From assembly GCA_010909165.1 (NCBI GenBank), contig VJWM01000258.1, positions 62,001 through 126,000 on the forward strand: DNA of 64,000 nt. The letters are read 5' to 3'. Below are positions 20,780 through 46,987 of the stretch, one piece after another; the first letter of the stretch is position 1, and every line of letters starts with the position of its first letter. The stretch comes from Anthoceros angustus (lineage: Eukaryota; Plantae; Anthocerotophyta). The translations under genes were made by a program, and so were the position numbers. The notes below the pieces were generated by a model, which was not told where the DNA came from, ran no database searches, and saw only the letters and a program-made list of their open reading frames with translations.

Positions 20780-22720
20780 GTTCTTGTTCTGTATGAACAA
20801 ATGGAGCAGGAGGGCCTAATTTGGGCTAACCCTGTTACTTTTGAGAAGCCTTTTGAATAACTGTGCAAGCACTGGTGCCTACAGAAGAGCAGACAGCTGC
20901 ACTCACAGATGGAGAACGTAGCTGGAGAACGTAATGTTGGGCAACTGCCTGGTAGACATGTATGGAAAATGTGGTGAACTGGGAGATGCACGACATGCAT
21001 GAGTGACGGACTACGTACGTGGTCTGAGCAAGGTTGCAGTCATCGTGTTTTTGGCAAGAGCTAGCTAGGCATGCTGCGAGGCTCTAACAGACGGATTAGT
21101 AGTAGTCAGTGGACGCCCCCTATGACATGGAATGCCCTGATATCTCGGTATGCACAGCAAGGGCTCGGGCAGGAGGGGCTTGTTGTGATATGGACAAATG
21201 AAGCAGGAGAGCCTGATTTTGGCAAACCATGTTACTTTTGCGTGCCTTCTGAAGACCTGTGCATGCGCTGGTGCCGTACAGAAGGGCAGGCAGCTGCGTC
21301 CACAGATTGTCGAACGAGGACTGCTGGATAATTGTAGTGTTGAGCAACTGCCTGGTGGACTATATGCAAAATGTGGAGAACTGGAAGATGCACGTCAGGT
21401 TTTCGACAGCATGAACACCAAGGATGTGGTGACGTTGAATGCCCTGATAGCTGGGTATGGGCAAATGGAGCAGGAGGGACCTGTTTTGGCTAACCATGTT
21501 ACTTTTACTTGCCTTCTGAAGGCCACAGCTTTGCAACCACTGGTGCGTTACAGAAGGGCAGGCAGCTGCACTCACAGTTTGTCGAAAGGAGACTGCTGGA
21601 TGACGTAGTGTTGGGCAACTGCCTGGTGGACAGGACGGGTTTAAAATGTGGTTAACTGGACGGGTTTTTGAAAGCTTGGCCACAAAGGACGTGGTGGCTT
21701 GGAATGCTGATATCAGCATGTGCTGATATCTGGGTATGCTGCTTATGATGATGGTCACGGAGCACTGGCTTGTTTTGGGGAGATGTTAGCTGCCGATGTT
21801 CAGCCTGACGGTGCTGCCTTCTATACTGGAAGATGCACGCTGGGTTTTTGAAAGCTTGGCCACAAAGGACGTGGTGACATGGAATGTCCTGATATCTGGG
21901 TATGGTGCTTATGATGATGGTCACAGATCACTGGCTTGTTGGGAGGAGATGGTAGTTGCCGATATTCAGCCTGATGGTGCTACATTTACTTGCCTTCCAG
22001 TAGCATGCAGTTATGAGGGACTGGTCGACGAGGGTCTCAAGCACTTTGATTCCATGGCTGATCAGCATGGCGTCAAATCTGTACTGTGGAGCATTACAAT
22101 GTCATGATTGATCGTCTTGGGCGTGCAGGCCATTTAGATTTGGCAGAGAAGATGATATTATCATGTGAGGGCCAAAGTAATGTTGGGGGCTTGACGTCTT
22201 TGTTGGATGCCTGCAAAAGTCACGGGGATATAGAGAGGGCGATGTGGTGTTTTGAAAGCAATGTTAAGCTGGACCCCCAGGAGGCGCCCGTCTATGTGGT
22301 CATGACCAATGCCTATGCAGATGCAGGTAGGTGGACCGATGTAGACAGGAGTGAAGCACAGAGAATGGTAGCAGAAGCTAACAAGAAACCTGCAACGGCG
22401 ACCATTGAGGTAAATAAGCTGGTAAAGCGATTCCTGGTGGGAGAAACTTGAAGGAGAGAGGATATTGCCCTTAAGGTCTTCACGTGTGAAGCAGGAGGGA
22501 GGCGACGTACCTTACAAAGTTGGTGTTGAAGCCAGTGTGTGAGAAGGAAAAGGAAAGATGCGCTTTGTGGGTATGCGGAGAAGCAAGCTCTGTCGTGTGG
22601 TCTCTTGAATACTCCCGAGTGGTGATGACGAAGAATCTACGCTTGTGCAGTGATTGCCACGGTTCTACGAAGATCATGTCAAGTCTTGAACATCGTTGTA
22701 AGGGAGGGGTCCCTTGTGCC
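20780..22720 (+). pseudogene. Decayed PLS-PPR-E1-E2-DYW:KP RNA-editing-factor gene
   Basis: Frameshifted or stop-interrupted PPR motifs (YAKCGELEDARQVFDSMNTKDVVTLNALIAGY; VTWNVLISGY; TFTCLPVACSYEGLVDEG; MIDRLGRAGHL). KP box NKKPATATIEV. DALCGYAEKQA replaces HAEKLA. KNLRLCSDCHGSTKIMS. Contains an internal ~180-bp duplication (21660-21800 vs 21842-21980). Confidence 0.85.
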
Positions 22721-23008
22721 TCGATTCGCAGCTGGTTCTTCGACCGTGAGAATAATGAAGAACTAGCCACAGTCGAGAGTGCACGCCAGAGTAATGCTTT
22801 TGGGGTGAACGTGCTTGCTTAACTCCATCGCTGTCCAAACTGAGACTTGGAGATGGTTGGCCAGCTCGTTCAATTTGGAGGCTTGCGATCTGGATGGGTC
22901 ACGGATTCGGGCGAGCTCACCCGCAAGGGACGGGCAGCTGTAGGAGATCAGGGATGGGGGGGGTGCAGGCCTGCAATTTGGCTCAGATCCGGTGGAATCC
23001 GGATCAGC

Positions 23009-28291: not shown

Positions 28292-29846
28292 GAGATGTCC
28301 AAGAACATGGTAACTGCACAGAGTGGCAACGTGCTCCAAACACCACATCATATTTCAGACGGTCACTCCCTCCCCCACCTGCGTCAATCGGAGCGACAGC
28401 TTGGCAATCAGGTGAGCTAGCGTGCATCAGCAAGCGCAAACACGGGTGCTTGATTACGCCGGTTGTGAACCCGCTCATGTTCTCAGCAGCCAGCAGATCC
28501 CCCAGACATACACAAAGCCCGCCCCACACACAAACACACACACCAGCTTCCAGCTCGCACACACACAAAGGGCTTCTCAACGACAGCCTAGGTTTTTTTA
28601 CCCTCCCAATACCGCGGACACGGAACAGACAATTCCGGATCCCTCCCAAAAAAAGACGGTGCCCTGGCAACTGCAACTATCGACAACTCTCCTCCTTCTC
28701 GTTCTCTCTCACCGGACGCCGCATCGCATGCCATCGTGCCGAGCCAAGCCACATGCATCGACAGCTGCCCGGCGCCGGGTGCATCTACCTACATACCACC
28801 CCGGCTCCCGAGTCCCGACCCGGACACGATGCTTCCGACCATGCCTCTCGATCACGCGCTCACGAATTCGCATCACTCACGGATGCTTCACTCAACGCCC
28901 GAGCCCGAGGTTTTTTGATGCAATTCCGCCAGGCCGAGAGGCGAGATTGTCCGGGAACGGGAAGAGGGACGGAATTGCAGGCAGGGCAATACGATGCAAG
29001 GCGCGAGGGGCAGCGTGTGAGAGGCAGGGAACAGGGACGCACCGCCACCGCATGCGGCCGGAGTCGCGGAGCCATGGCACCCGGTGGAGGCTACCTTGCT
29101 GGCCGTGGAGCTCCTGTCACAGCCGCGCTGAGCTGAAGACTGAGACTAGAACGAAGGTCTCTCTCTTGCGCCACCCGCAAGCTCCCCGTGACGACTGCAG
29201 CAGATAATGCAACGCACACCAGTCGTCAGGCCGGCTTCATCCCGTGCAGGTGCAAGTGCCAGGCCCAGGCGCGGCTGCTGCTGCTGCTTCCAGTCGGTCA
29301 TCGCCGGCGCGCCCTGTTGCACTCATTGGCAGAGAAAGCAGAGCTCCGGGCTGAGCCGGGTCGGCCCACACCCGCGGCATGGTCCCATTCACGACCCACC
29401 CCCCACGTGCTGGTCGCCTTCCGAGGTACCCACTACTGCTTCTGTAACGACATGTGTACCTCGTATGTATCATGTCCGCCACACGCTCCGGTTATACAGT
29501 AATGGAGATCGGCACCTAATAAGCATCTCCTCTTCGCCATCCCCTTCCTCTTCAGGCTTGGGATTGGTGCAAGTGCAGGGAAGCCAAATTTAACGCAATG
29601 GGTCCGTCTGGCTGGGCCGGCAGATGCAGTGCTTGCGACGGAGTCAGAGCTCACTGTTGGAGGTGTAGCGAGAGTGGCGCCTGTCGGAACTGGAATTGGG
29701 ATTGGGATTGGGATTGGGATTGTTGGATTGTTGCGGGGACGGGCAGAATGTCCAAACCCTACGATATGTGCAAATTTTTCATCCGGCAGGAGCATGTCGG
29801 GGATGTGAGAAAGGATACCGGACATGAATGATGTGTCTAAAATGAG

Positions 29847-32489
29847 ATGCAGCTGCCGGATGTGTCGATGCTGCGGCTGCCGGGCTCGTCGTGCATGGTT
29901 TGCTGCGTTGCTGCGGGAAACCATTCGCCATCCCGGGTGGATCGACGGCCTGGATTGAGGCTCACGGGGGCCAAGGAGCTGAGGTATGGCAGGCAGGGTG
30001 GGGTGGAGTCGGAGGACAGGGGTGTTGGTGGTGATGGCGTGGGAGGAAGAGGAGTCGTGGAGTTTTGGATGTTGCGGAAGCGGTGCGAGCAAGCGGAGCT
30101 CGGTGAGGCTGTGGACGCGTTGGAGCTGCTGGTGGAGGGGGGGTTTCGGGTGAGGTATACGGTCTTCTATCGGGTGCTGAGGAGGTGTATGGAACGGAAA
30201 GATCTTGGTCTTGGGAGGCGTGTGCATTCTCTGGCTCTGAGAAGGGGGTTGGGTAAGAATGCTTTCTTGGCCAATCACGTGATCGGCATGTATGCCTCTC
30301 ATGGGGAGTTGGAAGAGGCGGTGCAGGCGTTCGGAGAAGTGAGGACGCCCAGCGTGCACATGTGGGCTTCCATCATTCTGGCGCATGCCCGGCATGGGGA
30401 GCCCTGGGAGGGGGTTGGCTTGTACCGACGGATGCGGGAGGCGGGAGTTGAGCCGGATAGCAGGATTTTTGTGGCAGCTCTGAAGGCGTGTGCGGCTGCT
30501 GGGGACTTGGGTTTGGGGAAGGAGGTGCATGCTGATGTTCGGGAGAGTTCTGTGGAGGCCGACGTGTTTGTTGGAAATGGCTTGGTGAATATGTATGCTA
30601 AGTGCGGCAGCTTGGATGATGCTCGGAGAGTGTTTGACGGTTTGCCTGAGAGAGATGTGGTCACGTGGAATGCCATGATCGCAGGGTATTCTCAGCAGGG
30701 GCTTGCGGGAGAGGCCCTATCCCTGTATGCTACTATGCAATGTGAGGGCATCACTCCAGGCGATCGCGTCACCTTTCTGTGCCTGCTTCAGGCATGTGCG
30801 AGCTTGGGAGCAATGCAGCAGGGGAAGCAGCTTCACTCCCAGATTCGTGCCCAAGGGCTTGAGGCTGACGTGTTCATTGGCAGCTCCCTGGTCGACATGT
30901 ATGCAAAATGTGGTTGCTTGGACGAGGCTCGCAAAGTGTTTGACAGCTTGCCCAGGAGGGATGTGGTGACATGGACTGCGATGATTGCAGGCTATAGTCA
31001 GCAGGGGCGTGGGCAAGAAGCCCTCGCTCTGTATGCAGATATGCAACAGGAGGGCATCACTCCAGCGAACCGTGTGACGTTTGTGTGCCTTCTTCAGGCT
31101 TGTGCAAGTGCTGGAGCTCTCCAGCCTGGAAAGCACCTGCACTCACAAATTCAGGCCCGAGGCCTTGAAGGTGATTTGTTCATTGGAAGCTCACTGGTAC
31201 ATATGTATGCGAGTTGTGGGAGCTTGGAGGACGCTCGTAATGTGTTTGATGCTGTGCCCAGAGGAGATGTGGTGATCTGGAATGCCATGATTGCAGCATA
31301 TGCGCAGCAGGGGCTGGGGCGGGAAGCTCTTGCCCTCTATGCAAGTATGCAAGTTGACGGTGTCATTGTAGCTGATGACGTTACTTTTGTTTGCATCCTT
31401 CAAGCGTGTGCCAATGTGGGAGCAATTGGTCAAGGGAAGGAGCTTCACTCACAGATTCGCAAACGAGGCCTCGAAGGTGATACAGTCATTGGTAACAGTC
31501 TGGTGAATATGTATGCCAGATGTGGGAGGTTGGAAGAAGCTCGCGAATTCTTTGACAGCATGCCCAGACGAGATGTGGCAACGTGGAATGCTCTTTTGAA
31601 TGGTTATGCTGAACACAGTAAAACTGCCATGGCAATCTGGTGTTTTGAAGACATGGTGCAGCAAGGAGTTCAGCCAGATGAGACGACTTTTATATGTCTC
31701 CTTGTGGCTTGCAGTCATTCAGGTCTGGTGAAAGAAGGCCAGCAGTACTTTAGGATGATGGTGGAGGACTATGGGCTTGTGCCCACTGACTATCACCAGA
31801 GTTGCATGGTTGATCTTCTTGGGCGGTCAGGCCACCTGGAAGAGGCTGAGCATTTGCTGCAAACCACATCATTTGCGAATGACGTAGTAGGTTGGACAGC
31901 TTTGCTCTGTGCATGCAAGACCATTGGTGATGTAGAGCGTGGGCGTCGGTGCTTTGAACATCTGATAACAGTGGCACCCAAGGATGCAAGTTCATATGTG
32001 CTACTAGGGAACATCTACGCAAGTGCAGGCAGGTGGGATGATGTAGGCAGGATAGAAAGCTTGAGAAGGTCGTCAGGTGCTACAAAGAAGGCTGCAAAGG
32101 CGTGCATTGAAGTGAATACCGAGGTGCATGAATTCACAGTTGGGGAAGAGAGGTCTGACATCTCCTCAGAACTGAAAAGCTTGAATATGAGGTTGCAGGA
32201 GGAAGGAGGGCATGTACCACAAACCCATCTGGTGTTGAAGGCGTTATCTGACCAGGAGAAAGTGGATGCCTTATGTGGGCATGCGGAGAAACTGGCCTTG
32301 GCTTATGGCCTGCTCAACACACCAGATGGCACAACTTTGTTGGTCACCAAAAACCTTCGCATGTGCAATGACTGCCACAGCAGCACAAAGATCATGTCAC
32401 GACTCGAGAATAGAGAGATAATTGTGAGAGATGCACACCGTGTCCATCGATTTGTGGAAGGGGCTTGCTCCTGCAGGGATCGGCATTGA
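29847..32489 (+). CDS. Intronless PLS-class PPR protein with E1-E2 and DYW:KP deaminase-like domain ending in DRH (organellar RNA-editing factor)
   Basis: 880-aa ORF (true start may be a later ATG). 17 PLS repeats (L-S-P x4, L-S, P2-L2-S2), then E1 and E2, KKAAKACIEV in place of the PG box, HAEKLA, CNDCH, and C-terminal CSCRDRH. Confidence 0.97.
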   Translation: MQLPDVSMLRLPGSSCMVCCVAAGNHSPSRVDRRPGLRLTGAKELRYGRQGGVESEDRGVGGDGVGGRGVVEFWMLRKRCEQAELGEAVDALELLVEGGFRVRYTVFYRVLRRCMERKDLGLGRRVHSLALRRGLGKNAFLANHVIGMYASHGELEEAVQAFGEVRTPSVHMWASIILAHARHGEPWEGVGLYRRMREAGVEPDSRIFVAALKACAAAGDLGLGKEVHADVRESSVEADVFVGNGLVNMYAKCGSLDDARRVFDGLPERDVVTWNAMIAGYSQQGLAGEALSLYATMQCEGITPGDRVTFLCLLQACASLGAMQQGKQLHSQIRAQGLEADVFIGSSLVDMYAKCGCLDEARKVFDSLPRRDVVTWTAMIAGYSQQGRGQEALALYADMQQEGITPANRVTFVCLLQACASAGALQPGKHLHSQIQARGLEGDLFIGSSLVHMYASCGSLEDARNVFDAVPRGDVVIWNAMIAAYAQQGLGREALALYASMQVDGVIVADDVTFVCILQACANVGAIGQGKELHSQIRKRGLEGDTVIGNSLVNMYARCGRLEEAREFFDSMPRRDVATWNALLNGYAEHSKTAMAIWCFEDMVQQGVQPDETTFICLLVACSHSGLVKEGQQYFRMMVEDYGLVPTDYHQSCMVDLLGRSGHLEEAEHLLQTTSFANDVVGWTALLCACKTIGDVERGRRCFEHLITVAPKDASSYVLLGNIYASAGRWDDVGRIESLRRSSGATKKAAKACIEVNTEVHEFTVGEERSDISSELKSLNMRLQEEGGHVPQTHLVLKALSDQEKVDALCGHAEKLALAYGLLNTPDGTTLLVTKNLRMCNDCHSSTKIMSRLENREIIVRDAHRVHRFVEGACSCRDRH

Positions 32490-46308: not shown

Positions 46309-46987
46309 AGTCGTCACATTCTTGTGACCAAGTCAAATCAAATACTTATGAGCTTCTTCCAGTCGCCACACTTTGCATACATGTTTACTGTGGCCAAATA
46401 CATCACTTGAGTCCTCGTTCCTTAATGTGTGCATGGAGCTCCTTACCACAGGCTAAAGCGGGCACCCACACTTGCACATGCAGGAGACTGCAAGTGTGAT
46501 GGAATTGGGTGCCACGATGCCTTCTTCTTGCATAGCCACAGCAAGATGGAGAGCTTCACGCCCCATGCCTGCTGGAATATCACGCTATCATGGCAGTCCA
46601 TGTCACGACATCCTTCTCACGAAGCGAATCAAACACTCGTTGGGCGTCATCCAAGCTACCACATGCACCATGAAGCATGGGAAGAATGCAACGATATGGG
46701 CATGGGGAAGCAGTTATGGAATGGCCTCATTGGCACATAGATACTGGAACCAGAAGGCGCTCGTCTTGGGCGATTCTCGGATGAGGGGCCCCACTGCTTA
46801 GTGGGGCATAGCCTTGAGTTTGTAAGGCTAAATATCCACAGGCATATCAAGTAGCTTGGCATCTCTTCATGTGTACTTTTGTTCGTATCCTTTAATTTTT
46901 GGTTTAATCAAGTTGGTGTTCCAACATTCAAGCATGTGCAATTTGGAAAATATGAATGTCATGTACACACATTCGTATTCATGGTCG

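Follow-up and report, generated by a model that had tools for sequence, protein, structure and literature searches.

Introduction

Uridine-to-cytidine (U-to-C) RNA editing is a process without a characterised native enzyme, and the published work on it concerns consensus designs that stall at a protein-RNA crosslink. PPR proteins of the DYW:KP class are limited to hornworts, lycophytes and ferns, and their PPR codes match U-to-C editing sites (PMC9478123). Two hornwort subgroups, DRH and GRP, are named for the last three residues of the protein (PMC9478123); for their original descriptions, by Gerke et al. 2020 and Gutmann et al. 2020, we follow the summary given in PMC9478123. Here, we analysed a gene of the DRH subgroup in a 64,000-nucleotide stretch of DNA of the hornwort Anthoceros angustus (assembly GCA_010909165.1, contig VJWM01000258.1, positions 62,001 to 126,000 of the forward strand). 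The whole stretch is referred to as the window, and all coordinates are window positions. We consider the gene, at 29847..32489 (+), to be a nuclear intronless gene for a site-specific organellar editor of the DYW:KP DRH subgroup, with U-to-C as the best-supported direction, and we put the probability of this reading at roughly 0.6.

The closest systems that have been studied in the laboratory are designed proteins. Ichinose et al. made seven consensus designs, of which three, the GRP-type KP2 and KP3 and the fern-type KP6, performed U-to-C editing in E. coli; the active ones did not include KP1, the design based on DRH, and C-to-U editing was seen with no design there (PMC9478123). Hayes et al. 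2024 reported that designer KP proteins end crosslinked to RNA, proposed an attack of a lysine on uridine C4 and stressed that the native U-to-C enzyme had never been studied (PMC11332814). As hallmarks of the KP class, the same paper gives Ala for Ser before the catalytic Glu, a deletion of 3-4 residues in the PG-box region and the KP sequence; it also notes that in ferns the U-to-C edited RNAs are not crosslinked in planta (PMC11332814). According to Ichinose et al. 2025, Lys88 is essential for U-to-C editing, its replacement yields a C-to-U enzyme, and it is also required for RNA crosslinking in designer KP proteins (PMC11845758). In the same work, the balance of KP6 was shifted by substitutions towards the KP consensus: L6C, V17T, D116A and I119V favoured U-to-C, while E64G, L113V and F133H favoured C-to-U (PMC11845758). 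KP6 carries out C-to-U editing in vitro and in human cells, and in bacteria as well as human cells the designer KP proteins remain covalently attached to RNA and prevent translation (PMC11332814, PMC11845758).

Since the native enzyme is uncharacterised and the DRH design failed, any native DRH gene that is intact and has a clear PPR code can serve as a test object. The gene itself, though clean, is an ordinary representative of a very large family, the class having been described in 2020 (via PMC9478123). It is of practical value, offering a clean construct for which a specific target is predicted, and not of conceptual value.

An intact DYW:KP protein of the DRH type

The coding region is a single uninterrupted open reading frame (ORF) of 880 codons plus the stop, which begins with ATG and encodes a C-terminus reading ...CSCRDRH. 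In-frame stops lie just 5' of it, so the frame cannot be extended upstream without an intron. The list of ORFs and the Pfam matches together describe a complete intronless ORF for a PLS-class PPR protein with E1, E2 and a DYW:KP (DRH) domain. In the Pfam search, the 880-residue protein matched several PPR families (PF01535, expectation value E = 1.6e-79), the E_motif family PF20431 (E = 4.7e-14) and, at residues 788-878, DYW_deaminase PF14432 (E = 7.5e-35), all of them far above chance.

The DYW:KP domain (32085..32486, +) comprises 133 residues from K748, or 134 if K747 is included, and was delimited by PF14432, the match to OTP86 (7o4e), the tree and the structural model described below. We numbered it with K748 as position 1, so that K835 corresponds to Lys88 and M839 to Met92 of the DYW:KP numbering; this is consistent both with PMC9478123, where V95 of PG domains equals M92, and with PMC11845758. 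A length of 133 residues fits the DYW:KP class, in which a deletion of 3-4 residues after the box leaves domains of 132-133 residues. The first-pass annotation, made from the letters alone, had assigned an intact gene to the DYW:KP 'DRH' class on the basis of several signature elements, each of which we could locate. The sequence KKAAKACIEV stands at residues 747-756 (nt 32085-32114) in place of the canonical KxPGxSWIEV, its first seven residues, KKAAKAC (32085..32105, +), replacing the PG box, with Ala at the Pro of the name-giving 'KP'. Behind the box, the segment is shortened as had been claimed: our alignments have a gap of 4 residues at the position of SHP relative to PG-type domains. HAEKLA, noted earlier as a replacement of HSEKLA, occupies residues 812-817, and its HAE (H812, A813, E814; 32280..32288, +) provides the zinc-binding His, the KP-typical Ala and the catalytic Glu, with roles taken from PMC9478123 and PMC11332814. 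In the alignment, Lys835 (32349..32351, +) is the Lys88 of PMC11845758. Met839 directly precedes the intact CxxCH, present as CNDCH (C840-H844; 32364..32378, +) with the CxxC(H) zinc ligands, and both the ORF translation and the alignment place the DRH triplet at the very end (32478..32486, +), where it replaces DYW.

In a 30-sequence alignment of KP and PG domains, the protein kept 22 of the 22 invariant columns. These include the zinc His and Cys, the catalytic Glu, the C-terminal CSC and the Lys of T-K-N-L-R-M-C; among the residues expected of a DYW deaminase, H812, E814, C840, C843 and CSC all fall in such columns.

To place the domain among its relatives, we searched with the last 201 residues by words and obtained 92 proteins. 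The top matches were proteins from Logan assemblies, with up to 74% identity in the domain, carrying KKPAKACIEV, HAEKLA, CxDCH and a GDRH end. Next came proteins ending in GRP, then fern proteins (Adiantum, Ceratopteris; about 50% identity, and the nearest ones with a species name), and last canonical seed-plant DYW proteins at about 40% identity. A maximum-likelihood tree of 90 domains, computed with a quick search and poorly resolved at its inner forks, separated the PG-type and KP-type rows; the branch between them had 97% support in the approximate likelihood-ratio test. It placed our protein among the DRH rows, adjoining the GRP group, on a terminal branch of 0.13 (median 0.25).

The AlphaFold model of the DYW-like domain, built from the 30-sequence alignment, reached a predicted local distance difference test score of 90.4 and a predicted template modelling (TM) score of 0.84. 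In Foldseek, the model superposed on the DYW domain of 9kfx with a TM score of 0.91 and a root-mean-square deviation of 1.3 A, and on OTP86 with 0.77; the cytidine-deaminase toxins were more distant, scoring far lower than DYW domains. Residues 272-878 (607 residues) were collinear with the synthetic PPR-DYW protein 9kfx, whose structure was solved together with RNA (E = 1.9e-208), and the C-terminus matched the DYW domains of OTP86 (7o4e, E = 4e-31) and DYW1 (7w86, E = 7e-30). Sequence, tree and model agree: the protein is intact and truly belongs to the DRH subgroup of DYW:KP PPR proteins. The earlier class assignment is borne out by the tree grouping, the invariant columns and the DYW deaminase fold, and the 880 open codons do the same for the claim of an intact gene.

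Comparison with the described groups makes its position more precise. With hornwort DRH-type DYW:KP proteins it shares the PLS array with P2-L2-S2-E1-E2, the 133-residue domain, a K-x-A-x-A-type box, HAE, Lys88, Met92, CxxCH, the DRH end and the tree grouping, whereas it differs in the Ala for the Pro of 'KP', in His794, Val806 and Arg877, which are off the consensus, and in a PPR code unlike that of any retrieved relative. The designer proteins KP2 and KP3 (hornwort GRP), KP6 (fern) and KP1 (DRH) have the same domain class, HAE, Lys88 and CxxC; however, they are consensus domains mounted on synthetic arrays, whereas here a native protein carries its own array. The canonical DYW:PG C-to-U editors (OTP86 7o4e/7o4f, DYW1 7w86 and the synthetic 9kfx) share the fold (TM score 0.77-0.91), the zinc ligands, the catalytic Glu and the array architecture, with 44-51% identity in the domain. 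Compared with them, our protein lacks the PGxSW box and is 4 residues shorter after the box; HSE is replaced by HAE, the Val before CxxC by Met, and DYW by DRH.

The repeat array and the predicted RNA target

We cut the protein into motifs by register against the consensus PLS motifs. This gave 17 PPR motifs at residues 104-679 (30156..31883, +), in the order L-S-(P-L-S)x4-P2-L2-S2, in agreement with the alignment to 9kfx. They are followed by E1 (residues 680-713) and E2 (714-746), which together span 31884..32084 (+) and were recognised by PF20431 (E = 4.7e-14) and by the motif parse. The alternation of P, L and S up to P2-L2-S2, and then E1 and E2, is that of a PLS-class PPR-E1-E2-DYW protein. 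From the N- to the C-terminus, the residues at the fifth and last positions of the 17 motifs are YN, NS, AD, VD, ND, ND, LD, SD, TN, VD, SD, ND, VD, ND, ND, IT and SD. The first-pass annotation had given 17 such pairs, and our independent segmentation returned an identical list. It had also mentioned several P motifs of 36 residues; there are three (271-306, 373-408 and 475-510), and the extra residue of each appears as a one-column gap against 9kfx.

Ahead of these motifs, the parse identified a degenerate P-like PPR motif at residues 70-103 (30054..30155, +) with W/R at the fifth and last positions, which was absent from the earlier motif list. The remaining N-terminal extension of 69 residues (MQLPDVSMLRLPGSS...; 29847..30053, +) is rich in Arg, Gly and Ser, and from this composition we presume that it is an organelle-targeting presequence. 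The three central P-L-S triplets (residues 271-576; 30657-31574, +) are 66-74% identical to one another in protein and 70-76% in DNA, whereas their identity to the first triplet is 43-45% and to P2-L2-S2 28-31%. Such a high mutual identity suggests either internal triplet duplication or strong consensus pressure.

To read the array, we used the code ND for U, NS for C, SD for G and TN for A, left the L motifs open and placed S2 at position -4. For the P and S motifs, this predicts roughly 5'-nC(R)nUUnGAnGUnUUnG-nnn-[target]. The 11 informative P/S motifs predict C, R, U, U, G, A, G, U, U, U and G at positions -19, -18, -16, -15, -13, -12, -10, -9, -7, -6 and -4, respectively, of which the AD motif gives the weakest base call. 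The same motif had been proposed before our analysis, and the independently parsed P/S residues reproduced it. Under a simple composition model, 100,000 candidate bases would contain about 0.05 perfect matches by chance; the number rises to about 2 when up to one mismatch is allowed and to about 25 when up to two are. For the code to be informative, the true site must match it nearly perfectly, and natural editing factors often lack such a match to their site.

Relatives and the possibility of an idle paralog

The exact protein had no match in the public protein collection that we searched, and a search with the PPR array gave matches dominated by long, repeat-rich PPR proteins. Among the retrieved proteins, local BLAST did not find an ortholog: the best full-length relative, P0017, is of the GRP type (871 residues) and 58.5% identical. 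The loci of P0017 and of a further relative, P0001, on contigs of the Logan assemblies SRR33208241/2 have flanks without similarity to the window outside the gene. As these flanks share nothing with the window, we regard P0017 and P0001 as relatives and not as positional orthologs. On the contigs of the relative (L001 3686-3844 and L002 3292-3450), a 52-codon ORF overlaps the stop of P0017 and is probably a gene-calling artefact.

This situation raises the question of whether the gene could be intact but idle, that is, a young paralog which is not expressed or is no longer needed and has not yet acquired a stop codon. The family is huge and turns over fast, a decayed KP copy lies 7 kb upstream and a PPR fragment 14 kb downstream, no retrieved relative is an ortholog with a similar PPR code, and four usually conserved positions of the DYW domain deviate. 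However, the frame stays open for 880 codons, none of the invariant catalytic and structural columns is lost, the terminal branch falls below the median in length and the AlphaFold model is confident. We therefore hold an idle copy to be improbable, and a gene that most likely encodes a site-specific organellar editing factor, as judged from its domains and residues, is the reading that we prefer.

Editing direction

For the preferred reading, a site-specific editor with U-to-C as the best-supported direction, the following steps can be proposed. The N-terminal extension would carry the protein into plastids or mitochondria, where the PLS array may bind single-stranded RNA, each motif taking up one nucleotide and S2 lying at position -4. 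The zinc-dependent deaminase-like C-terminal domain would then act on the pyrimidine at position 0. If the reaction is U-to-C, Lys835 (Lys88) would attack uridine C4, aided by Glu814 and zinc, as for the designer KP proteins. Expression, targeting, the target sequence and the direction of the reaction are what we infer from the gene.

Several points weigh against this reading. The box keeps its Lys but has Ala for the Pro of 'KP', a position that is non-Pro in 8 of about 39 sampled KP-type relatives; the box KKAAKAC recurs identically in one of the relatives, P0004. His794 (Glu/Asp in relatives), Val806 (Glu in relatives) and Arg877 (Gly in most relatives) also deviate; neither these three nor the Ala of the box affects a known catalytic residue. 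At most 7 of 18 fifth/last pairs are common to our protein and any retrieved relative. As a U-to-C design in E. coli, the DRH-based KP1 was inactive (PMC9478123), and the literature that we read contained no U-to-C activity of any DRH-type protein, native or designed. Finally, the residues Gly64, Val113 and His133, which shift KP6 towards C-to-U, are native in this protein.

The last of these points leads to a different view of the reaction, in which the protein is a site-specific editor that works C-to-U, or in both directions, by ordinary hydrolytic deamination with zinc and glutamate despite its KP-type domain. All residues of canonical deamination (HxE, CxxC) are present, KP6 is capable of C-to-U editing in vitro and in human cells (PMC11332814, PMC11845758), the three residues just named turn KP6 into a C-to-U enzyme, and KP1 showed no U-to-C activity in E. 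coli (PMC9478123). On the other hand, Lys88 is kept, and Cys6, Thr17, Ala116 and Val119, the residues that shift KP6 towards U-to-C, are native here too. Moreover, lineages with U-to-C editing are the only ones that have KP domains, the PPR codes of these proteins are reported to match U-to-C sites, and KP1 had no C-to-U activity either (PMC9478123). Since both sets of residues are native in this protein, the positions that set the balance of KP6 do not settle the direction. The caution of the first-pass annotation, that the direction is not certain for DRH proteins, was well placed, with KP1 not active and the balance residues pointing both ways. Taken together, we regard a C-to-U or bidirectional enzyme as a serious though less likely rival, and keep U-to-C as the best-supported direction.

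The protein might also bind RNA without converting any base. It could then function in stabilising or processing the RNA or in controlling translation, or it could crosslink a single time and so block the RNA that it targets. Non-editing roles are known for many PPR proteins. The designer KP proteins, moreover, remain covalently on their RNA and block translation (PMC11332814, PMC11845758). Nevertheless, the protein retains a complete, well conserved catalytic domain at its C-terminal end, and the U-to-C edited RNAs of ferns are not crosslinked in planta (PMC11332814), and we consider such a role very improbable.

Within the preferred reading of a U-to-C editor, one further proposal can be made only tentatively: the native DRH protein, unlike the inactive consensus design, may be a complete U-to-C enzyme that frees the cytidine at one organellar site that can be identified. 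If true, reverse editing would gain its first pair of native enzyme and site, together with a template free of the stuck crosslink of the designer proteins.

Other features of the window

About 7 kb upstream of the gene, at 20860-22750 (+), we found a second PPR-DYW:KP locus. It retains the box KKPATATIEV and the sequence TKNLRLCSDCH; however, it contains in-frame stops and at least five frame changes, and unrelated residues replace the HAEKLA site. It is a pseudogene, a decayed paralog. At 46320-46684 (-), in a stretch of low G+C content, there is a short PPR fragment (...VVTWTAMIA...), about as long as one P-L-S triplet and broken up by stops.

An antisense ORF of 365 residues (29433..30530, -) overlaps the 5' part of the gene. 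We rejected it as a gene, since it most probably arises as a by-product of the coding strand, which is rich in G+C and strongly G-skewed (GC skew +0.29 at 30-32 kb). About 130 bp 5' of the start codon, at 29690-29725 (+), there is a short (GGGATT)n-like microsatellite.

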